NCBI GenBank assembly: GCA_009103225.1
Contig: RHPI01002090.1
Span: 1,163,932-1,227,931, forward strand
Direction: 5' to 3'
Source: Chlorokybus atmophyticus
Lineage: Eukaryota; Plantae; Mesostigma and Chlorokybus algae
DNA: 64,000 nt
Below the pieces are notes generated by a model. The model was given only the letters and a program-made list of their open reading frames with translations. It made no database searches and was not told where the DNA came from. The translations under genes were made by a program, and so were the position numbers. Numbering within the stretch: the stretch's first letter is position 1; every line of letters starts with the position of its first letter. Of this stretch, positions 17,313 to 34,944 are shown piece after piece.

Positions 17313-20300
17313 CTATGTGTCCCGCTGTGCTTTGCGCCGGCGCGTGGTTCTTGGTTGCCCTGTGGCACTCGTACTCGCCTCAGCTATCTCACCCTCCGCT
17401 TCATCGACAGGTTGTCGCACATCCTCTTCCTCTTCTTCCTTGGTGTCATCACCCTCTTCAGCCTCTGCTTCCTCTGGGGCATCATCCGGTTGCGTAATGT
17501 CTGCCTTCTTGGCTTCTTCAACAGTAACTATCGTGTCCGCACTTGGCTATGCCACACACACAAGATGATGGTTAGCATAGCCAGCTTATAACACTGAATA
17601 TCTCAATATACTAAATGAAAAATGCAAATTACCTTTTGCTTTCCTTTCAAGCAGCACGCCGTCAACAAGAATATGAATGCCAAAGGCGACGCCAACAGTG
17701 GATACACCAGCATTTTATTCTGCTCTAGTTGTTGCACGAGCGGCTGCACACAAACAACATCAGTTGTGACCTTCCGTGAAGCCTTTCTATCAAACAATGT
17801 CAGCTCAAGAGACATGCTTGATACACAACTACAGCACTACAAACGACAATGTAGCAATACCAGGCTAAGTTTGCACAGCACATGATCCGGGGTGCCACAG
17901 TGCTACAGGCATGCACTAGCTGAAGGCGTGCGCAAAGACTGTGTGTAAGACTGCGATAACTACGTTGAATCTCATGCAAAGTATGGAACGTGATTCAGAT
18001 CTCAGCGGCCAAGCGTCTTGATAGCATGTTATGACAGGCGATACATGAACACATCAGCAGAGTTTGGAAATAGCATGCGATGAAGAAGCTGTCAGCGCGA
18101 AGAGAGCAGAACAGCAACACAATGACTTGCATGAAACTAACCCCTCCACGCATGCAAGAAATGCTCACCGTCAAGTATGGCCGCAGTGCTGCTCCCTTCA
18201 CATCGTCCAAGTAAGCACGCAACGAGTCTATGACCCTTGTGGGAAACTGCAGTAGCCATGGTGCACAACAGAGTGAGTCAAGCAGCTGGCACAACTGACT
18301 AGCATGCTTCAAGATGCACAGAGATAAAGCAAAACCACATGCGTGCAACCAGCCAGCTACAGCGGCTTACGTCTTCTGCTTCTTCATCGTCCTCGTCCTT
18401 CTTGGTAGCAGCTGCAGCCTTTTGCGCACCAAACTTCTCCTGCCAGGTTTTGGCACGGAAATCCTTGGCGACTTCCTCATCATGCGTTATCAGGAAGTTG
18501 TCGAAGGTGATGCCCTTATTCATTGTCCAGATTTCAATGGCAGCGGCCACAATGGGTTCAAAGTTATGAGGATGAGGGTCCTCGAAGTAGTTGGGGTTGA
18601 GTATCTGCCGGGGCTTCCATTCTCCCTGCAGCAATGGAAATAAAGTGATGCTACACATAATGCAACCACAACAAGTGCATGCCACTTTGGTTGCTGTGGC
18701 AGCAGACATGCAGCTGCTTGAGTACAAGAACATTGTGGCATATCCTAGCTTGACTGTCCAATAGACATGTGGATGGTAGAGGCTACAAGACAATGCAACA
18801 TGCATATTGTTGTGCCTGTCATTTGAGTTTGTAGCGCATCAATGCTCGGAAATATATCTGGACCAAATGAGCCGATGCGACTTGAGCAAGGTGCTCAGCA
18901 CTTGCTAGATGAATGTTACCTTGTACTCAGGATTGTCAATCAGCGGTGCAGTCCATTTGCCCTTGTACTTGGGGTTCTTGGTCATTGGCCGAGTCCATGC
19001 ACCGCAACCAGGCGCCTCGTCGCAGCGTGGGTTGCGAACCTTTGGTGGCTCCCATGCTCCGTCCTCCTCCTCATCCCATCCCTCTGGCATCTCAGCCTCC
19101 GGGTCATCGATCAACTCTGGCTCATCATCCAGCCAGCCAGCAGGCTTTGTGGCAGACTCGTCCTGTTCAACATAATAATAGATTAGTACAAGCTTGAACT
19201 CCTACTTACGTACTTACTCCGCTATTATACAGCAGCACTGATCCCCCGATCATCGCCCCCGCCNNNNNNNNNNNNNNNNNNNNNNNNNNNNNNNNNNNNN
19301 NNNNNNNNNNNNNNNNACATGCACGCACGGCATGCACTGAGGACGACAACCACTGGCCATGCACCACATTGATGGAATGACCTCCATCCTATGTGTAAGG
19401 CAAATTGGACAGCATGTGTGATACTGCAATATGTCTGGTGCAATGCACAATTGTGGAAAATCTTGGTGTGCTTGTAACACAATCAGTGCTGCAGGATGTT
19501 CCCCGCTCAGCTCGCACACACGATCCATGAATACTGGTAAAGAAGCTGCATTTAATGTGGGCAATGCAAGGGGATGCCTTGTATGGTATAGACATCCCTA
19601 CGCAATGCAATTACCCAGCGAAAGCAACTTGGGAAGTTGCTTGCCTGCGACACCCCGCCAAAACAGCAAAATGCATGACAGGATGGCGCAATTGCATGCT
19701 TACCGGAATCATCAAAGGAGCACTCTCATCCCAGTCATCCGGCTTCTTGGCATTGGGGTCGGGTATCTTGGCAGTGTCCACCCAGTCCTCGGGCTTCTTG
19801 TCCTCGGGGTCATCCATCATTTTGGGAGGATTGACTGGCGGATCAAAGTCCGTCAACAGGCTTCCAGACGACCTTGATTCGCCATCAACTAGAACCTCGT
19901 ACGTGTTGTCGGGGCGAATGACGGCCGTGTAGACATGGCTGAGCGAGTCTGTAATGGGCGTGGGAGGGTTCTTCAAATGCTTCTCCTCAAACTCTCCTGT
20001 TTTGGGGTTCTTATGCTGAAGGATGAGGTGGACCTTGTTTGTGGAACCACACTTGTCCTGCATGCAAGCGCATTATTTCGCAAGAGAGGGGAATCTGTCC
20101 AATCCGCATGACTACACACGAACGAAGGTGTCTCTTCAAATGTACTGCATGAAAAGCAAGAGCTCCTGTGCACGCCGTACCGGACCAAACATGATAACGT
20201 AAGGCGTTTGATCATTCATCTGGTAGGGGTCGAAGTTGTCATTCTCGCGCAGGAATTTCACATAAGCCCCTCCGCAGTCAATGCCGTCTTGGAAGCGGAC

Positions 20301-20913
20301 CTCGTACTGCAACACTGTGGTCTTGTCCTTGGGGTCAAATGGCTCCTTGAGTAGCGCTGTAATGCCATACGCCCTCGCCTCCTGAGGTACGTACAAAGTT
20401 GCGTCTTGCGTCGCTTCGTCCTCCTTCAAAATCATCTTGCCTGTTGCGGAGCAAGCGTGCACTTTTTCTGTACATGACTTTAGGCCATGCAGCCAAGGAA
20501 GCAAATACTACATCCATGCTTTGCATGCGTGTACAATGCGTGTTCAGAACAGTTCAACAGGACGAGTACTTTCACTCGAACAATGCTAAACCAGGCACCA
20601 TTGTCCCGCACTGACCGTTGTACTTGCGCTGGGCTGAGGACATCCATCGCTTCTCCCAATTTCCCTCCGTGAACGTCTCAACAAACGCGTAAGCACCATT
20701 CGGCCTGACAGCCTGTCCCCGCAGAACGCACAAACGCACCAAGTTAAACGCAAGGCTTCAAGAAAACAAGCAGCCGCCACAGGCATGCCGATGACATGCA
20801 CGTCCCAGTCCTGAACTCCGAAAACAACGCACCTCCTCGGCAGCGACGGCAATGCTGCACAGCGCGCAAGCAGAAGCCAACGCCAACAGCATCCACCAGC
20901 CGACCCTCGCCAT
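17313..20913 (-). CDS. CNX: Calnexin
   Basis: Signal peptide, [34 protein letters not shown]-domain repeats ([42 protein letters not shown]), IEIWTM, TM exon 17765-17640, acidic tail ending RRRKAQRDT*. An N-gap lies in one intron. Confidence 0.97.
19264..19316. other. Assembly gap (N run) inside a calnexin intron
   Basis: Run of n. Confidence 1.
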
Positions 20914-25190: not shown

Positions 25191-26244
25191 TTGCATCTTG
25201 TATACTATTCGAATCACATTTGTTGAATTCCAAACTAATGGCTGATTACGAGTCAGACCTTAATACGGCTAGGCAGAATCCTTCACAACTAATTAGCTAA
25301 CACCAGGTACCTACAATCTCTAAGTCAGGAACACCCTAGCCGCGGCTGTCACACGCTGAAAATAACCATAGCGTGATCGTCTACCGTGCGCAACACTCTG
25401 TCGGAAAATAATGGCATACTGCGAGAGGCAACGCTCCAGCCATCTCACTTGTATCACCCGCCGCACGCATGGCTTGAGCAAATGCTCAAAGGCTAGGCCC
25501 ATAGTCCAACCACCTCCGTAGCCAATGGGTTGAAGCAAGTGGCTGCACAATTGTCTCCATACTTGTGATTCTGAATGACTCAAAAACAGTACCAAATGTC
25601 ATGCACGACATATGAGAACGCCAGCTCGATTTTGGTTGCAATACTTGCAGCAATTGTACAAAAGCTTTGCTGTTTGACGTGTGCATATGTAATTGTGCTG
25701 CTGCATGCAAACCGATCACAAGTCATACCATCCAAAGTATCACAGCTAGAGTGCACAACCGGGCTAGCGCTTGCCGCGCTACTACTGCAGTACCACTACC
25801 TGCTCTGCACTGTTATACATGCATGCGCGCATATGTAGGTCAAATTGTTTGCACAATCAGCCGAACAGACTTCATGGTAGATGGACGGCACCGGCAGCAA
25901 GACACACAGGACGTGGACTGCACGTTCTCCCTCTCGCTTCCCCGCCTCCCAAACTCTCTCTCTCCTCCGTTGCCTCTGGTCCTGCGGTTGGTTGCCATGG
26001 TGCTGATCCGGCCTGCCTCTAGTTGACCAGCGGCAAGGTCCTGATCCCTGCCCTGCTCTGCCCTATTCCTTACTGCGCTGGTCAGCAGCATTACATAACA
26101 AACTCTACCAGCAACTGGTGGTGTGCGGGGTAGGAATGCTAGAGCAGTTGCTGGGTGGAGTGTGGGGAGGAGCTTGTGCATCACTCTGATGACTTTCAGC
26201 CACAGCGCATGCAACAGACAGCGTATGTGCTTGCAGGCACATTG

Positions 26245-29200
26245 CTATTCGCCGGCTTTCATTTTCTTCGACAGTTGAGGGATAGCAATGTCTGATGTCA
26301 GCACCCACCGCTCTTCCGCTTCAGTGTCCATTGAAGCACCATGGTTGCAACACCTGACCAGAAACTTGCACATGCACGTAAACGGTTGCGCTTGCATGGA
26401 GACGGCACTTGTGACACCTCGACAGCTGCGGCAAGGGTGGAGTGGCTCCTGCAGCACCAGGCCAGCGTACCATGCCTGAAAGCACACAACTGGTGAAGGC
26501 ACAACATATTACGGCTGCTGATGGGCGAACTTCGAAAACCCATGTGTGCGCCACAGAATGCACAGCAACAGGCACGCCTGCGTACATATCTACATGCAAC
26601 CCACTCACGCATACAAATATTTACCTAGTTGGATGCAAAAGATGTTTCACAACCGAGCGCGTCTCATTGACGCGCGCTTACTCATACGTGTTACAACTTC
26701 ATTGGATGCCTGCCCGCTTGGGGATGCAATGTGTTGTGTGCATGTATATGCGCAAATGCCATCATGCATGTTACTTTGTTTGTAAGCGCTCACTTTGCCA
26801 TGGACAAGCGGATGCCGGCGTGACAACTTGACAAAACAGATGACGAAGTCACCAGCTGCAATATCTGTTCTCCGTTCTATTAAGTCGCTGACGGGTTGCA
26901 GTCGGTCCCGAGGTACCGTCTCATACTCGTCAAAGGTTGAGTACCTAAGAAGCAGTTTTAATGATGCTGAGCAGATCTTGCCAACTGCACAACAAGGCAA
27001 GGGAGCCAAGGGGTTGTACTCACTTGACGTAGTAAGTGTTGTTGGGTCTCGGTTCGATCATGTCCAAGCCCCACCACGCACCGTGAGCCTCAGCGTCCCA
27101 CAGCTCAGGGAGAAGCTCGTGTGGTGGAATGTACGTGTCGACATTTTGTGGTTGTGGACTGGACACGCGTGTGTAATTGGATCTCTTCGGATTCCAGACT
27201 GTTGACGGCAATGTGGCATCAGTACTGCAGGTAAGACGCCTCACCACATTACGCTTTCGTCGATTGTGCTTTTTGCTGCCATCTGGAGGAGAAGTGGTCG
27301 AGTCAAGCGGCTTGACTCGCTTCGTCTTTGCCTGCCTAAAGGTCCCCCTGTACATCAACACTCGGTAATGCTGCTTGCAAACTCTGAGGTGTTGCAACGC
27401 TCGCCAAGAAGACCAGTTCACCACTGCGAACAACAGCTACTACCAACATGCACAGGCGTGCTTATGCGCGCACAAGCTGCAACCACTCACCTACAAAGCT
27501 CCGGGTATGCTTCTTGCAGCTGTGTGCTGAAGGTGTGGTTTTGTGTTGGCGTGCTCTTCTCTATGACAGTGGCAATATGAGCAGCCCCCATTGATGACAG
27601 AAGTAGTTCTGGCTCCTTGTCTGGCGGTTGTTGTGGTTGTGGTTGTGGTTCTGGCTGTCGTTGTTGTTGTCGCTGTTGTCGTTGCTGTTGTTGTTGCTGT
27701 CGTTGTTGTTGCTGTGGTTGCGGCTGATTGAGCGTTTCCAACATGCGGATCGCATTGTCACGAATAGCATAGTAACGCATGCGCACGGGTGAGGCGTGCT
27801 TCAACCCTTCCACTGGCCTTACCACCACCCAATGTTTTGTCAACTCATCCATGTACACCCCCACCCTTTCGGGCACCGCTTCTTCAGTGTAGTAGAAACT
27901 TGTCAGTACCACTGCACGAATAACACGGGTGCAGCACAACAACAATGTACCTTCAATGACGTGGAGCGGGTAGCCGTGAAAATCTGTCACGTGAGCAACG
28001 TGGTTGGGTGTATGTTGGGACTGCAATTGAAACTCGCTTTGCGCTCTGTCCCAAACGAGGGCGGCTATCTTCGGATCGGAGAATTGCCCCAATACATGAA
28101 AGCGGCCTTTCACCCACACCCTAGCAAAGGCAGCCTTGGGGGCCCTAACATGAACTCCTACATACTTGCGCGCCGGCTCTGTCCGGCCAAGGCAACAAGT
28201 TCAGGAACAGCAGCTGACAACAACAACAACAACAACAACAACCACAACCACAACCACGACCACCACCACCACCACCACCACCACAACCACAACAACCCTG
28301 TCTGTTGTGGACACACGGCTACATGTACAAGTGCCATGGCTCAGCGTTGTGATGGACCCGGAACCCAGAAGTAGCATGTGTTGCGTGTTGCCAAGCACAA
28401 CAACCGTACCAACATTTAACACGCAGACGATGACAATGCAAATAAAGATAGGAGAGCACCTATGATGGGATCCACAATTCTAGAAGCATATTGAGCTATA
28501 CCAAAACTTAGTACGAACTCCACAGCACACTGGCAAATACGAAAGCAAGGTACAACTTGTACAAGTTGTGCACACCCCCATGCAATTGCACAACCAAGCC
28601 TCCACTGGCTGTACCATGCGTAGCAATGTCGTCCGCAACAACTTCGCGACATTCTCGCCGACGCTTGTTGTGCTGCAATCTGGCCAAGTTGGTACTGCTC
28701 TCAACTGTGGCCCTCCCAATCTGGCTCGTTTGACGTTTCTTGCCACGCCGCTGCAGAATATCATTCTGAACACTGTGCGATGTTGTCTTGACCCTCTTTA
28801 TGACTGACGTTTCCAGGACACCAAAGCAAAGCAAATTTGTTGCGACGAACATCAACATCGATCTTGGCCTACCTGTGCTGGTGAGGAGTGCGAGTGCTTG
28901 AGCGCAAAAGATGTTGGCGCATCTTTGTAGGGTACAACAACTTGCGTTGCTGTTGGCATTGGCGTTGGTGGCACAATAACTGAACGGCGTTCTGCCCCTG
29001 TTGTATGACTCCTTATCTCTTGTTTTGCTGCCGCTGACTTGGCTTTTTGGCCTCTGATGGAATTGCAACCACTACCAACATCGTCATCCATAAAGTCCGC
29101 GGGAAACAACTTTCTGTTCGTCAGCTTAGCAAGACCATGTTTGTCCACGGCGCTGTCGTAAGCCCTGGCAGCCTCCTTGGCACTCAGGTAGCAGCCAAGT

Positions 29201-29438
29201 GAAATGTATTTGCCGCTTGCCCACAAACAAGCACGGAAGTTGCTACTCTGAGCAACGTAAGAAACGCCAACGTACTTTGTGCGCACTGTTGGGTGTGGGG
29301 AAGGTCACAACAAAAGCACACAAAGACAAGCATCGTTGTAAGGATGTGGCCCCCGTATGCACAGTACCTGAGTAAAATGCTCTCTTTGGTGTTTTGTGTA
29401 CCGTGCGGCCTGAGCTTGAGGGATGATAATCTTCAGCC
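26245..29438 (-). CDS. Multi-AP2/ERF-domain protein with C-terminal SAWADEE-like (tandem Tudor plus Zn) domain; 5' end unresolved (probably further upstream)
   Basis: AP2-1 KYVGVSYVAQSSNFRACLWASGKYISLGCYLSAKEAARAYD...LFP (~29280-29100). AP2-2 KYVGVHV...ARVWVKGRFHVLGQFSDPKIAALVWDRA (~28170-28030). AP2-like-3 VGVYMDELTKHWVV...AIRMLE. PolyQ linker, then LWDAEAHGAWW...YVKYSTFDEYETVPRDRLQP...GDFVICF...AWYAGLVLQEPLHPCRSC...CMCKFLVR. Splice phases are compatible. Confidence 0.7.
28216..28275 (+). repeat. (AAC)/(ACC) microsatellite in an intron of the AP2 gene
   Basis: caacaacaacaacaacaacaaccacaaccacaaccacgaccaccaccacc... read directly. Confidence 0.9.
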
Positions 29439-31844
29439 TGGCCCAATAGCAACACACCAAATGCAGTCAAAAGCAGTAGTTACTATGCCTCACAGCGCAA
29501 CCACCTCATACCTTGAGAATTCAGCCACAACAGGACACAACATTACCACAAATGCTGTAGTAACGACATTAACACTCAACCATGCATGGTACAGGAGATG
29601 AACCTGACCTGCATCGGTTGCATGCTGACGGACTCCAGTATCTTTGTGCAGAGTTGTCTCAGTGTAGATGTAGAATGTCGAGGTTTTGCTCACAAGGCAA
29701 AGTTGTGCCTGGTTTGCAGTCCGTCACCTCGCCACGCTTCCACCGCTTGCCACTGCACGCCGCTCCTGTACAGAGCCGGTTTGACTCATCATGCATTCAC
29801 TTAAGCACGGGGGCGGGAGGGGGGGTGGGGGGTGGCGGGTCCATGTGTGCTGCGTGTACAAACATGTTCATGTCATGCAGCAGAACAACTGTCCCGAGCG
29901 CAGCTTAACTACCCGTGCACCCAGCACAAGCAGCAGTCTAGCTGGCCAGCAAACTAGCAGCATGACGCCGCACAGTACAGCTGGGTTTACCCCACATGCA
30001 TTATGCAAATGACTGCGCATGGTTCTGGGTTGCGGGCATGCATCAAACACTGGCTCACAGCTGCTGATGCCGTGTGCATGACCTAGCTGACAATATGCAT
30101 GCCTTCATGGTACATTGAAGTGCGCTTGGTACTTGCACACCGGTGGCAATGAACATGGCACACGCATGCATAGGTCACTATCATCACCTGAAACTGACAA
30201 GCAAAACCAAGCTCGAGGGATGCGCGCTCACATGCATGCACCCACGCACTAGAGCAAGGCTTCAGAGCAAGGTGTGTGACTCCAGCGCCACAAGCAGGAA
30301 AAGCAGTGTGTTGTTTCGGGCGTCACCGGTGGTCTGGCAGCGTCCAAGTGTTAGCAGCATCAATGGTGAGATTGAGTGAGGGTTTTGCTGACGGATTACT
30401 AGGGAACGCAAGGCCGCCAGCTCAAGCCCAGACTAGCTTGCAGCTTCCAGTTTTCTGTGAGTGCCATGCGTGTGTTCCCATGAGGCAACCCTGCTTGACG
30501 TAGAAGACTCCGTCGTGTGCATATCGCTATTGCACATGTTGGCATGCACGCATGCCAACATGTGCAATAGCGATATGATGTGTCTTTGTGCAAGCGTATG
30601 TGTCTGTGATTGCGCCAATTACTTGGGGGAAGGAGTGCGACTCTCATGCTGTGAGTGTCACTGTTCTATTGCGCATGATGCTCTCTTTTGCTTGCTTTAC
30701 TCACAACATATGTTGAGACGTCACGGCCATGCTCAAGCTCTCATTGTAGTGCACACAATATCATGGCGCAAAGGCACAACATGGAGACAAGGTGCATGGT
30801 GTGCAGGGCGTGGTAACCATCTGGTTAGGAGAGAGATGTAAGCCCTAAAGATTTGCACAGCGTCTTCATGTTGTGCCTTTACGCAACACTCTCACATAGT
30901 TTTGGTGCATAGTCTACACAATTCACGTTAAGTGCATGTCTGCAGTATTTGTAGTGGTAGTGCCCTTGGTAACAATAGACTGGCAAGGTGTCCGCAAGAG
31001 CAGCAGCAGCAGCGACAGAGACCATGTTCACGAGATTGGATTGTGCAGTAGTAGATGCTTAAGTAGAAGCTTGTGTAGCATGGCATGGTATGTAGTTAAA
31101 CATGTACTACGAGTACTCACTCGCCTGTAACCCTCGCCTTCGCCGTCAAGCGCAAACCACAGGACTCCTGCTGCTCACCAGCTCCCTCTCCAGGCCGTGC
31201 AAGCTTGCTTCATCCCCCCGTAGCTGCTGCTCCCGCTCCCTCCTCCTCACCCGCCTTGTCCTTGAGCACTTCTCCCTTACCCGCAGTCGGCGGCCACCGC
31301 CACCGCCACCGCCGCCACCGCAGGCAGTGCGAGCACCCAGCGCACATCTTGAACACAGTGTAAGCATCACTGTGCTCACAACATCAGCTGCGTGCAGGCA
31401 TGGGCGGCGGCCGCGGTGGGTGCAGGAAGAGGACGACAACGAGGGGCAGGAGGAGGCCGCTGAGCCTGCTGCTCCTTTGTAGACGCTTGAGGAAGCGCTA
31501 GCCTAAGATTGTCAGCTTGTGCATGAGTCTGCGGAGGTTACATGGGCTTGAACAAAACCTTATAACAACAGCCATTAGCCATCAAGAGCTTTGTGATTCT
31601 TCAGCATGCGTCTTCTGTTGCTTGTCACTGCGTTCAGTGAATTTAAGCAGGCGGAGCTGAATATGCATGCGGTAGTTTATTGCTGGCATGCAACCCTGCA
31701 ACAGAAGTCGTTCACCAACAACCCCATGCAATAACAACAACAACGCATCAACAGCTGCAAACTTTCCTTACCATGGCCACTGCACATGCATGCTTGCTTC
31801 ATCTGACAAACTACGATGCACTTGATGTAATGCATGCCCCCCCC

Positions 31845-32119
31845 NNNNNNNNNNNNNNNNNNNNNNNNNNNNNNNNNNNNNNNNNNNNNNNNNNNNNNNN
31901 NNNNNNNNNNNNNNNNNNNNNNNNNNNNNNNNNNNNNNNNNNNNNNNNNNNNNNNNNNNNNNNNNNNNNNNNNNNNNNNNNNNNNNNNNNNNNNNNNNNN
32001 NNNNNNNNNNNNNNNNNNNNNNNNNNNNNNNNNNNNNNNNNNNNNNNNNNNNNNNNNNNNNNNNNNNNNNNNNNNNNNNNNNNNNNNNNNNNNNNNNNNN
32101 NNNNNNNNNNNNNNNNNNN
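31845..32119. other. Assembly gap (N run) after a poly-C run
   Basis: Run of n. Confidence 1.
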
Positions 32120-32594
32120 CCCAGTCAAAGGCACTCTACCTGCAACAGACAAGCTCCGCAGCCTGGGGACCGGCTTCGCTGCGGGTCAGGAAGAATACGC
32201 TGAGTTGGTTTATTTCGATCAGTCACCATGCTCAAGGAGCAATGTGCGTTTTTGTTGCACACACGCACGGTGTGTGTGCGGGTCACTGCTCAAGAATGTG
32301 AGCCGATTTGTGTGACAAACATACTTGCATCCTTGATTATGTCCCCCTGACTTGTCTAAAAGGACGGACAATATCGTATGAGATTGGCAATCTCAATACA
32401 AACACACCAACTCCACACCACAACAGCAGCAAGCAACAACATGAAGGTCACGTGCAAGCCAGAAATGCTTGTGAGTGGGTAGAGCGCAACTGTTGCTGCA
32501 AGCTATACTTCCAGATGTTGTTATACTTCCAATTTGGCCTCTATGCACAAATCTTCACTTAGCCACTCCCTCGTGATACACAACTACCCTGGTG

Positions 32595-34944
32595 TCAACC
32601 CCAGTCAGCGAGCACGGTGGGTTCCTCCTGTGGCTGTGGCGCCGTACTTCCTCCTGCTACGGCTGACGAGTCACTGCTTGTTGCTGGAGCGAGGCGTGCG
32701 CGAGACGACTTCCAGGCGAGCAGACGGTCGAGGTCCCCGCTTCCCACTGCGGCCAGCAGAGGATTGAGCGCCAACCGCCCCTTCACGATACCCAAATTCA
32801 CACGCGCAACGTCCACCAATCGCCGGTCACCCACCTACAGCACACACGCATGGAGGGATGCTTAGCATCGCGTATCAGCGCTTGGTTGTTGGTTATTGTT
32901 ACTAAGTTGTATGAAAAAAACAGCCACCTGAGTGGCGAGAGCGACAAAGCGGTCAAAGTGAGCTTCGGCAGTCTCGGGATGGCCCTGCGCAAGGTACAGC
33001 TTTCCGAGGGCGCAGGCAGCATTTGCCTGCGCTCTCAACGGCAGCTCCACGCTCCGCGCCAGGTCCAGCAGCGCATGAAGGTGCGCCAGCGCCTGCTCGG
33101 GATGCCCAAGCGCCTGCGAAACCAAAACAAATACAAAGCTCAATTTCAAACACCTACATCACTACATATGTAGGCCACAGCATAGCCATCCGCACAATGG
33201 TGTTGTCATGTCACTCCACCTGGTGGCAAGCGGCTGTGGCAGCGCAAGCAGCACCCTCGCCAGCGCGATCGTGGAGGCTGCGACAGGAGGCTAGGTAGCC
33301 CTGCTGCGAGGCGAGGGCACGCTCTGGCTGGCCCAGGCGCAGGTACACCTTGCCCAGCTCATGCTGCGCGCGCCCCACGGCAGCTGCATCACCAGCCTGC
33401 AGAGACACACAGGGAGGGAGGAAGACAGCATCAGTCCTGACCCACACTCTGGTGGTCTGATGGTAATGTTGTTCATGTTCAAGGTGACCGTGTGTGTTCT
33501 GCACCTTTTGGGCCATCTCGAGGCAGTGGTCGAGGGCTTCCGTGGCGGCTGTCTCGTTGCCGGGGTGGCTGAGGAGATTCTGTGCGTGGGCGGCGTAGGC
33601 GCGAGCTAGCTCCGCGGCGGCCTCGCGCGCGTCCTCCCCGCGCCGCTCCCTCCCCGCTTCCTCCTCCCCGGCCACCTCCCTGACTTCCTCGGCCAGGGCC
33701 AGCGTGCGCTCGTGGTCCCGCGCAGCCCCAGCCAGGTCCCCCTGCAGAGACCGGCAGCGGCCCAACGCGCGCGACGCCGCCAGCTGCGCGCCCATGTCAC
33801 CCTCCTTCGATGCACCCTCCAGACATTTTGTATAGAAGAATATGGCCTGAGACACCTGCTCCGCACTCTCAAAGTAACCCGCTAGACGCTCGTACGCCCC
33901 GTACACACCCTTCTTGTCACCTACATCACACGAGGCACATGAGGCACACAATACACAAGTCTTGGCCAATCAAATGGTCAGTTGCAAAGGTACGTTTCAA
34001 GCTACAATGTACAGTGCTTGCCTCTACGAGAGGCAATTTCGGTGGCAACGAGGTGGTCGCGGAGGTGCGGGAGGCTGGCGGGGTTGATGGCGTGGTTGTG
34101 GTTGGTGCTATGGTGATCATCGGCGTCGACACTGTCGCGGCGGCTGCCACTCGCACTAGCGGCTTCGCTGTCGGCACGCACGAGCCGGAAGAAGTCCTGA
34201 AACGCCACAGGGTGCCCTCGCGCGAGCATGTCGATGCACAGGGCTTGCGCCGTGCTACCGTTGTTGTTGTTGGTACTGCGGGCATCTCCCCCGTCGTGAG
34301 GGGCGGAGGCAGCGGCAGGGTCCCGCTCCGCCGCATTCACCTCCGCAAGCAGCCTCTCCTTGAAGCTCTTCTTCATGCTCCCAGCCTTCTCTGCTGCCGC
34401 GTGCGAAGGAGGCGACGAGCTGCCTCGCAACTTCGACGCGCAACCAGACACATGCACAAAAAGTGAGCCTGATCGTACTTTCGACCCGAAACACACACAA
34501 GCACGGACATGCACAAAAGACTGTCAGCCACTGTTGTGCTTGGGGACCTTTACCTCGTGCCTGCAAAACCCAATCGTAAACGCACGCGACACCATACTCA
34601 AGCATATCACTCGTGCTGAAATGCAAGAACAGTGATGGAGTTGATTGCTTAACGAAACATTCCAATCGTCATGAAACATTTCAATGCAGCATTTGCAGCT
34701 GCTTCTTGAACCAATCTTTAGGTCTGTGTGTACAGGAATTCAATGCTAGGCTGGCTCACATAGCTGGCTTCAAGTGGACATGTATTAAACCAATCACTGC
34801 CAACAAGTTGTCAAGTGTATTGAGAGCGTACTGAGAGCACAACTCAACTCAGCTTGACAGATCGGTCAACGGATGCAGTTCAGCCCTTACCTTCAGACCG
34901 CGAGGACTGCTCGCAGTCCTTGCGGCAACTTCCGTCGCAGCCAT
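32595..34944 (-). CDS. TTC29: Tetratricopeptide repeat protein 29-like (cilia/flagella-associated)
   Basis: LCIDMLARGHPVAFQDFFRLV...LRDHLVATEIASRRG, VYGAYERLAGYF...AIFFYTKCL, several TPR helices (AQHELGKVYLRLG, ANAACALGKLYLAQG), ARVNLGIVKG near the end. Start MAATEVAARTASSPRGLK| at 34944 is inferred. Confidence 0.8.

Follow-up and report, generated by a model that had tools for sequence, protein, structure and literature searches.

On the minus strand of a 64,000-nt stretch of Chlorokybus atmophyticus DNA (the window, to which all coordinates refer) lies a gene that raises the question of whether a streptophyte transcription factor joins AP2 domains to a histone-mark reader in one polypeptide and, if so, to which reader family its C-terminal tail belongs. 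Fusions of a sequence-specific DNA-binding domain with a histone-mark reader, for example in ARFs and SHH1/2, illustrate direct sensing of chromatin state by transcription factors, and recent work has reportedly found REM factors guiding DNA methylation. Chlorokybus is placed on the earliest-branching streptophyte lineage. If the tail reads histone methylation, the protein would be a compact natural reader of a DNA motif plus a chromatin mark, and it would bear on when transcription factors acquired readers of the SAWADEE/Agenet type.

Gene structure and transcripts

The gene is transcribed and spliced, as seen in transcript contigs from two studies. A spliced contig of 3,107 nt (run X1, record 1) matches the window with 0 mismatches, spans nine joints and unites all exons; every joint reads CT..AC on the plus strand, equal to GT..AG on the minus strand, and six of the nine were seen independently in run X2, from a separate study, including the joint over intron 27348-27490. 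Translation of the nine coding exons gives precisely the annotated 652-aa Chlorokybus protein P0001 (C. atmophyticus, JGI Chlat1 4012), each exon, when translated singly, being a consecutive substring of the stored database protein. Translation starts at ATG 29623, five codons upstream of the left limit assigned in an earlier note on this DNA, and an in-frame TGA lies further upstream at 29692-29690. The neighbouring genes, a calreticulin gene and a TPR gene, are ordinary. This is a real, expressed, intron-rich nuclear gene of Chlorokybus, with the following features.

30187..30336, minus strand: 5′ UTR exon (X1 record 1 and X2 record 6, joint 29764/30187); the transcript contig runs ~418 nt further upstream past 30336
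29609..29764, minus strand: start-codon exon, residues 1-5, ATG 29623-29621 (transcript and translation)
29368..29437, minus strand: coding exon, residues 6-29 (transcript and translation)
28873..29285, minus strand: coding exon, residues 29-166, holding AP2 domain 1 (Pfam AP2 and independent profile)
about 29122-29280, minus strand: AP2 domain 1, residues 31-83
28615..28750, minus strand: coding exon, residues 167-212, basic linker (transcript and translation)
27951..28178, minus strand: coding exon, residues 212-288, holding AP2 domain 2 (identity to AP2-1 and independent profile)
about 28045-28167, minus strand: AP2 domain 2, core residues 216-256
27491..27881, minus strand: coding exon, residues 288-418, ending at donor GT 27490-27489 (transcript and translation)
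within 27491..27881, minus strand: marginal AP2-like block 3, residues 294-340
27619-27726, minus strand: Q/R/P-rich polyQ linker, residues about 340-375
27348..27490, minus strand: 143-nt intron between the AP2 half and the tail half, containing TGA 27489-27487
27024..27347, minus strand: coding exon, residues 418-526, basic linker KKHNRRKR and then the start of putative Tudor-like half 1
within 27024..27347, minus strand: start of putative Tudor-like half 1, sequence ELWDAEAHGAWWGL...YYVK
26794..26944, minus strand: coding exon, residues 526-576, end of half 1, predicted linker helix and strand 1 of half 2 (GDFVICF)
26245..26475, minus strand: last coding exon, residues 577-652 and TAG stop, remainder of half 2
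about 26341-26439, minus strand: His/Cys cluster (His589, Cys591, Cys594, Cys610, Cys612, Cys618, Cys619, His621)
25806..26244, to 25681 in the X2 contig, minus strand: 3′ UTR (transcript)

The earlier note had seen a chance that the donor at 27490 goes unused and that the transcript ends at the adjacent TGA. The donor GT 27490-27489 is in use in both the X1 and X2 contigs, so TGA 27489-27487 is intronic; the joint is supported on its shorter side by 130 letters in X1 and 62 letters in X2. The acceptor, previously placed at or near 27331, is AG 27349-27348, and the next exon begins at 27347. Were intron 27348-27490 retained, the product would be an AP2-only isoform of 418 residues; the preceding intron, 27882-27950, is 69 nt long and in frame. 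As proposed, the AP2 exons are thus joined to the C-terminal exons in one transcript and one reading frame (X1 and X2 contigs, P0001 match), and all of the motifs quoted for the locus occur in P0001: KYVGV...LG...AA..YD/WD, VGVY...HWVV, polyQ, LWDAEAHGAWW, STFDEYETVPRDRLQP, GDFVICF and AWYAG...CMCKFLVR. Within the basic linker of residues 167-212, the clusters RRGKKRQ and NKRRRE appear NLS-like and may direct the protein to the nucleus.

The AP2 domains

Sequence comparison gives statistical support to two AP2 domains, and at least these two are real. AP2-1 matches Pfam AP2 (PF00847) at E 6.2e-6 (26.9 bits) on the exon ORF and at E 2.5e-5 (24.9 bits) on the full protein, where the gathering score is 33.3, and the same family is listed for P0001 in the database's precomputed annotation. 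AP2-2 and block 3 have no Pfam match of their own. The first two domains share 40% identity over 43 residues (z = 11 against shuffles), and both are recovered by an independent profile made only from the five AP2 domains of P0004, a protein of another organism: with E values in single-sequence space, residues 31-83 score 24.3 bits (E 1.5e-9) and residues 216-256 score 9.3 bits (E 6.9e-5).

Three AP2-like blocks had been counted at this locus; two of them stand on the evidence above, and the third does not reach their level. Block 3 aligns to the P0004-built profile over only 20 residues (294-313) at 0.2 bits (E 0.05), gives z about 0 against shuffles when compared with AP2-1 or AP2-2, and matches one AP2 domain of P0004 at a pairwise E of 0.08. 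The motif pattern YVGV ... LG.F ... (E)AA.AYD, together with the independent profile, picks out the two domains and not block 3, which we describe as a marginal AP2-like block, possibly a degenerate AP2 remnant. The two supported domains are divergent and of the ‘KYVGV...LG.F...EAA’ type, which is common outside land plants. In alignment, both domains are substituted at several Trp/Arg positions that are conserved in the P0004 AP2 consensus, and because of these losses and the sub-gathering Pfam scores we treat DNA binding by the AP2 pair as putative.

The C-terminal tail

Residues about 497-642 (~150 residues, beta-rich) most likely fold into two barrels that belong, as a highly divergent pair, to the Tudor/Agenet/SAWADEE (‘Royal’) superfamily, as suggested by sequence comparison and structure prediction. 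Relatives of the tail were sought widely. An exhaustive phmmer search of the last 76 residues (the last coding exon) against 1.84 billion representative proteins returned no true relative besides P0001 itself; P0002 and P0003, the other matches, were rejected as tandem-repeat artefacts with unrelated Pfam noise. Word searches found P0001 only, whether the query was the tail by itself or the full-length protein containing it, a metagenome scan with tail peptides gave no confirmed locus, and a word search with the AP2 half found only P0004, which shares the AP2 domains and not the tail. No orthologue of the gene was detected in the searched collections. With no relative of the tail detected in these searches, sequence conservation offers no argument on its behalf.

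An orphan sequence of this kind could be a recently acquired, poorly constrained and unfolded extra on a protein that acts as a plain two-AP2 transcription factor, a reading that the low AF2 confidence and the lack of a detectable orthologue in the searched collections would also fit. We consider it very improbable, as the three precisely spliced in-frame exons are retained in the transcripts of two studies, and the tail is rich in aromatic/hydrophobic strand patterns and paired Cys/His, unlike the low-complexity linker before it.

The tail weakly resembles a Tudor/Agenet-type histone reader. Agenet (PF05641) is the sole Pfam family that surfaces for it, at E 0.14 and 13.1 bits (gathering score 27), aligning residues 504-537 with profile positions 12-52 of 61 and thus covering the first half only. 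Its language-model neighbours begin with Agenet clusters (0.86, 0.85 and 0.85), after which come Tudor_3 and Spin-Ssty, at 0.84-0.83 together with SAWADEE, and DUF4772, and nine of the ten best matches fall in one family or clan; all of these scores are below 0.9, the level under which such scores serve as leads only. Two AF2 models made without an alignment have pLDDT of 37 and 50, too poor for a structural test; at that low confidence, residues 494-645 are predicted to form four strands, a helix and five strands. Both halves carry HG(K)AW[WY].GL...EP and a parallel later strand, a weak internal repeat (z 1.8-2.5). The tail has some traits of the proposed tandem Tudor-like module, namely the weak Agenet match, the Tudor-clan neighbours, the predicted 4 + 5 strands and the weak repeat; none of its family matches is significant.

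These same hints might instead be generic features of small barrels, in which case the tail would be an unrelated beta domain, rich in Cys/His and specific to the lineage, such as a zinc-stabilised binder of proteins or nucleic acids, and would not read histones. Consistent with this, none of the searches found relatives of the tail, every family hint lies below significance, and fold searches retrieve barrels of the OB, KOW and cold-shock-like types no less readily than anything else; Foldseek against the PDB, VIA wide, the VIA second look and the Atlas shape search, run on the better AF2 model, all returned matches at noise level. However, independent weak signals meet on one clan (Agenet as the only Pfam match, nine of ten language-model matches, repeated Tudor-like strands), and we regard an unrelated beta domain as unlikely.

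On the divergent Tudor-like reading, a His/Cys-rich insertion would sit in the loop before strand 3 of barrel 2 and probably binds zinc. The eight Cys/His within residues 589-621 are enough ligands in number for a Cys3His site.

That arrangement bears on the narrower proposal, made in the earlier note, that the tail is a SAWADEE domain. The tail could be a true but very divergent member of that family, a zinc tandem Tudor related to SHH1/SHH2 with a Cys3His zinc and dual H3K9me/H3K4me0 reading, paired here with AP2. As a lead rather than a test, the tail has parallels to motifs that we take to be typical of SAWADEE: half 1 has GAW[YW] near its beginning, half 2 opens with GD.V.CF, and His...CxC[KR]FLVR precedes strand 3. 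Its half-2 His/Cys cluster also lies roughly where the SAWADEE zinc site is presumably found. The language-model neighbours include a SAWADEE cluster at rank 17 (0.83), and among the best 50 Foldseek matches listed the Royal family is represented solely by SAWADEE chains of maize SHH2 (7ef1_B, rank 35, E 1.1).

Against this, the first SAWADEE Cys, which we take to lie before the GD motif, has no counterpart in the tail, and an insertion of ~15 residues splits the presumed zinc site. The Pfam profile check of the spliced protein recovered AP2, below its gathering score, but no row at E ≤ 10 for SAWADEE (PF16719), whether the query was P0001, residues 440-652 or 494-645, either half or single exons, although the shorter Agenet model does surface. 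PDB searches with exons, the whole tail and sub-pieces (phmmer, E ≤ 10) gave chance matches only and no SHH1/SHH2 chain, and a two-row profile of the tail's two halves likewise met only chance matches and no SHH1/SHH2 chain among all PDB chains at E ≤ 10; the collection searched includes the SHH1/SHH2 SAWADEE chains. In the exhaustive phmmer search, the exon that carries CxC.FLVR matched no SAWADEE protein of plants. Furthermore, TAPscan v4 dates the HD-SAWADEE family to the Klebsormidium/Phragmoplastophyta ancestor, after the Chlorokybus split. A specifically SAWADEE tail is thus not supported, and we judge it a doubtful reading. Were it true, the SAWADEE module would be older than the HD-SAWADEE family and shuffled independently of it, an early-branching streptophyte would pair the reader with AP2 and not with a homeodomain, and one polypeptide would read DNA sequence and H3K9 methylation together.

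Proposed function and comparison with known systems

The analysis provides a transcript-validated gene model, a corrected AP2 count (two plus a remnant in place of three) and an orphan reader-like tail that current profiles leave unplaced. On balance, and with slightly better than even confidence, we favor P0001 as a lineage-restricted putative transcription factor composed of two divergent AP2 domains, an AP2 remnant, polyQ and NLS-like linkers and a divergent Tudor-like tail, for which we infer chromatin reading. From N to C terminus, the protein would present its two AP2 domains, the degenerate remnant, a polyQ/Pro-rich linker with basic NLS-like clusters and the beta-rich module. The AP2 domains would put it at DNA motifs, and the C-terminal module, with its many aromatics, may bind another chromatin partner or a histone tail, the latter probably at methyl-lysine through those aromatics, such that binding or activity would depend jointly on DNA sequence and chromatin state.

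P0001 is a multi-AP2 factor with a divergent, probably Tudor-like tail. The pairing of a DNA-binding domain with a reader is already known, and our reading draws on those precedents: the homeodomain plus SAWADEE of SHH1/2, the AP2 plus Chromo of P0004 and the B3 plus cryptic Tudor of ARFs. Like SHH1/DTF1 and SHH2, P0001 has a DNA-binding-type domain followed by a C-terminal module of ~130-150 residues that is predicted to comprise two beta halves, the second of which holds a Cys/His cluster. Unlike them, its partner domain is AP2 and not a homeodomain, its tail has no SAWADEE profile or sequence match, and its Cys/His spacing differs, with ~15 extra residues. SAWADEE domains have a tandem Tudor-like fold that recognises H3K9me (SHH1/SHH2 literature, including PMC9170682), and their zinc is bound by Cys3His, the ligand set described for SHH2. 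SHH2 is widespread and a SWI/SNF subunit, whereas the RdDM role is that of SHH1, which has been called apparently angiosperm-specific (PMC9170682); the suggested route from P0001 to silencing machinery is accordingly weak.

A tandem Tudor-like fold is also found in the tandem Agenet pairs of AGDP1/ADCP1, which recognise H3K9me2/H3K4me0. Agenet-domain proteins of plants give the best matches of the P0001 tail, none of them significant (Pfam E 0.14; top three language-model clusters), but the tail scores far under the gathering score (13.1 vs 27 bits) and over its first half only. We know of no Agenet domain with a His/Cys cluster of this kind.

P0004 (692 aa; transcript-like contigs JGI 3300018896, 3300018717 and ERR1719196) resembles P0001 in combining several KYVGV(S/H)W-type AP2 domains with a Royal-family reader-type domain, in its case a Chromo match at E 3.7e-5, just below the gathering score. 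It differs in that its AP2 domains number five and are well conserved, the first two flank the chromodomain, and its own tail is a coiled coil; nothing in it resembles the P0001 tail. ARFs, one of which is present in Chlorokybus, have their B3 domain set in a cryptic Tudor scaffold (PMC11685440). They too are streptophyte transcription factors in which a DNA-binding domain of plant type occurs together with a module derived from Tudor, as it would in P0001 if its tail has the predicted fold. In ARFs, however, the DNA-binding domain is B3 and not AP2, and the Tudor-like part is a dimerisation/ancillary scaffold and not a C-terminal tail.

Transcript and protein of the AP2 gene

The AP2 gene lies on the minus strand of an intron-rich eukaryotic region of about 51% GC. 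Contigs of two public sequencing runs from different studies (X1 and X2) were mapped on window positions 25500–30500, leaving out two repeats, a (GTT/GTG)n-type microsatellite in a 436-nt intron (28205–28300) and the CAA/CAG-rich coding stretch for the polyQ linker (27620–27727). Record 1 of X1 (3,107 nt, zero mismatches) spans nine joints, all CT..AC on the plus strand and GT..AG on the gene strand, and six of the nine also occur in shorter contigs of the independent X2 study. As nine canonical introns are exactly absent from the contigs, their source is spliced RNA, and the gene is transcribed.

Exons of the AP2 gene, mapped from contigs
30336..30187, minus: 5′UTR exon, extending further upstream
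29764..29609, minus: exon containing the ATG at 29623
29437..29368, minus: coding exon
29285..28873, minus: coding exon
28750..28615, minus: coding exon
28178..27951, minus: coding exon
27881..27491, minus: coding exon
27347..27024, minus: coding exon
26944..26794, minus: coding exon
26475..26245, minus: last coding exon (exon 10)
From the 26245 exon to about 25806/25681, minus: 3′UTR

The start codon is the first ATG downstream of an in-frame TGA (29692–29690), giving a coding total of 1,959 nt, or 652 codons plus stop. The first 418 nt of the X1 transcript contig are unplaced on the mapped stretch and may lie near or beyond an assembly gap (an N run at about 31840–32120), some 1.5 kb upstream of the mapped 5′UTR exon. 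Within the 422-nt 5′UTR intron, a C-rich stretch (29809–29840) attracts very deep 31-mers (up to 4,700, three mismatches each) from runs X3 and X6, which otherwise lack the AP2 gene; this depth probably reflects a low-complexity word common to abundant transcripts.

The earlier note had joined the AP2 exons to downstream reader exons through a donor beside a TGA (27489–27487), and spliced contigs of both runs bear this out: the exon ends at 27491, with donor GT at 27490–27489, and the frame continues from ...ELCR to GTFRQAKTKR.... The acceptor, placed by that note near 27331, is the AG at 27349–27348, and the next exon starts at 27347. Because run contigs show joints rather than isoform proportions, the 143-nt intron may at times be retained, which would give an AP2-only isoform, and so may the 69-nt intron between the exons of the second and third AP2-like blocks (27882–27950, minus strand), which is spliced out in the X1 contig but, being a stop-free multiple of three, would add 23 in-frame residues.

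With the last coding exon as query, an exhaustive phmmer search of 1.84 billion representative proteins retrieved P0001, a 652-aa database entry that matches the exon exactly at residues 577–652. The nine coding exons, each translated alone, are consecutive substrings of this entry. P0001 corresponds to EukProt EP00898_Chlorokybus_atmophyticus_P003347 and jgi/Chlat1/4012/Chrsp26S03992, with PF00847 as its only precomputed family; the gene model is already in public annotation, as an AP2 protein only. Strain CCAC 0220, from which the sequence comes, has since been renamed C. melkonianii (PMC11685440). The genomic context is ordinary, with a calreticulin gene downstream and a TPR gene upstream on the same strand. 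Three ORF pieces at about 18299–20504 (minus) match successive parts of the Pfam Calreticulin profile (E 5e-16 to 8e-49), identifying a predicted intron-split calreticulin/calnexin gene, and a 252-aa ORF at 33211–33969 (minus), with several sub-threshold TPR matches (TPR_12 at E 1.2e-5), probably represents one exon of a gene with TPR repeats.

AP2 domains

Judged by sequence comparison, P0001 holds two real, divergent AP2 domains. AP2-1 (residues 31–74) matches Pfam AP2 at E 2.5e-5 with 24.9 bits (26.9 on the exon ORF), short of the 33.3-bit gathering score. AP2-2 (residues about 214–276) has no Pfam match. It shares 40% identity with AP2-1 across 43 residues, and its Smith-Waterman z against shuffled sequences is 11. 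When the AP2 half served as query, P0004 was the sole other protein to come up, and an independent HMM made from its five AP2 domains alone recovered residues 31–83 of P0001 at 24.3 bits and 216–256 at 9.3 bits. Of the three AP2 blocks originally proposed, these two therefore stand; the third, which the same HMM touches only at residues 294–313 (0.2 bits) and which resembles neither AP2-1 nor AP2-2 (z about 0), is at most a degenerate remnant. A Q/R/P-rich stretch follows the AP2 blocks (residues ~340–375), and basic clusters at 167–173, 193–199 and 443–455 look like nuclear localisation signals.

The C-terminal tail

The tail module (residues about 497–642) is an orphan at the sequence level, since no search returned a relative: none came from a metagenome scan or from two word searches, and the exhaustive search with exon 10, which carries a CxC-K-FLVR motif, gave P0001 itself plus just two other matches, both discarded as tandem-repeat artefacts. 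The tail had been read as a SAWADEE domain, as in the land-plant homeodomain proteins SHH1 and SHH2, a reading that profiles do not uphold. Neither the full protein nor the isolated tail, its halves or its exons matched Pfam SAWADEE at E ≤ 10, and searches of all PDB chain sequences, including the maize SHH2 SAWADEE chains and presumably SHH1 chain 4IUT, gave chance matches only. With no profile, PDB or exhaustive sequence match, a true SAWADEE homologue is unlikely.

What evidence there is favours the Tudor clan more broadly. For residues 494–645 Pfam reports Agenet alone (E 0.14, 13.1 bits, covering 504–537), and the closest named language-model clusters are three plant Agenet clusters (0.86–0.85), then Tudor_3, Spin-Ssty and DUF4772, while a SAWADEE cluster comes at rank 17 (0.83). 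Nine of the top ten matches belong to one family or clan, and every score is below the 0.9 level. A weak repeat, HG(K)AW[WY].GL...EP, occurs in both tail halves, with a parallel strand after it (z 1.8–2.5). For lack of available homologues, AlphaFold2 was run on single sequences, with pLDDT of 37 (residues 470–652) and 50 (residues 494–645). The latter model runs through four strands, one helix and then five further strands, as expected for a tandem Tudor, but is not good enough to assign a fold. Foldseek with this model listed the maize SHH2 SAWADEE chains and nothing below E 0.1, and an Atlas shape search with the same low-confidence model returned noise only.

Zinc in SHH2 SAWADEE is bound via Cys3His. 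P0001 has ample candidate ligands (His589, Cys591, Cys594, Cys610, Cys612, Cys618, Cys619 and His621), in what we take to be the loop and strand that carry His...CxC in SHH1, but here the cluster is split by an insertion of ~15 residues. That these residues belong to an unrelated Cys/His-rich beta domain seems improbable, and a functionless tail very much more so. We slightly favor a lineage-restricted nuclear factor in which the two AP2 domains would bind DNA and the tail would be a strongly diverged double barrel of the Royal family, bearing a zinc-binding insertion and contacting histone tails or another chromatin partner.

Comparison with known fusions

The suggestion that P0001 targets silencing machinery is weak: the RdDM factor SHH1 is apparently angiosperm-specific, SHH2, present in most streptophytes, is a SWI/SNF subunit (PMC9170682), and the origin of HD-SAWADEE proteins is dated after the Chlorokybus split (TAPscan v4). 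Both domain names occur in 24 papers, and among the 15 of these that were listed none describes an AP2-SAWADEE fusion by title or abstract. Proteins that combine a DNA-binding domain with a module of the Royal family are already known, and P0001 adds a case with an unplaceable tail. P0004 (L001:155-2233; 692 aa), from intron-less transcript-like contigs (JGI 3300018896, 3300018717; ERR1719196), has a Chromo-like segment at residues 192–216 (E 3.7e-5) and a coiled-coil tail, a predicted eukaryotic AP2 plus methyl-lysine-reader-type architecture. It thus pairs five AP2 domains with a Chromo domain and SHH1/2 pair a homeodomain with SAWADEE, whereas P0001 pairs two AP2 domains with an orphan tail; ARFs combine B3 with a cryptic Tudor (PMC11685440), where P0001 has AP2 and a Tudor-like candidate.
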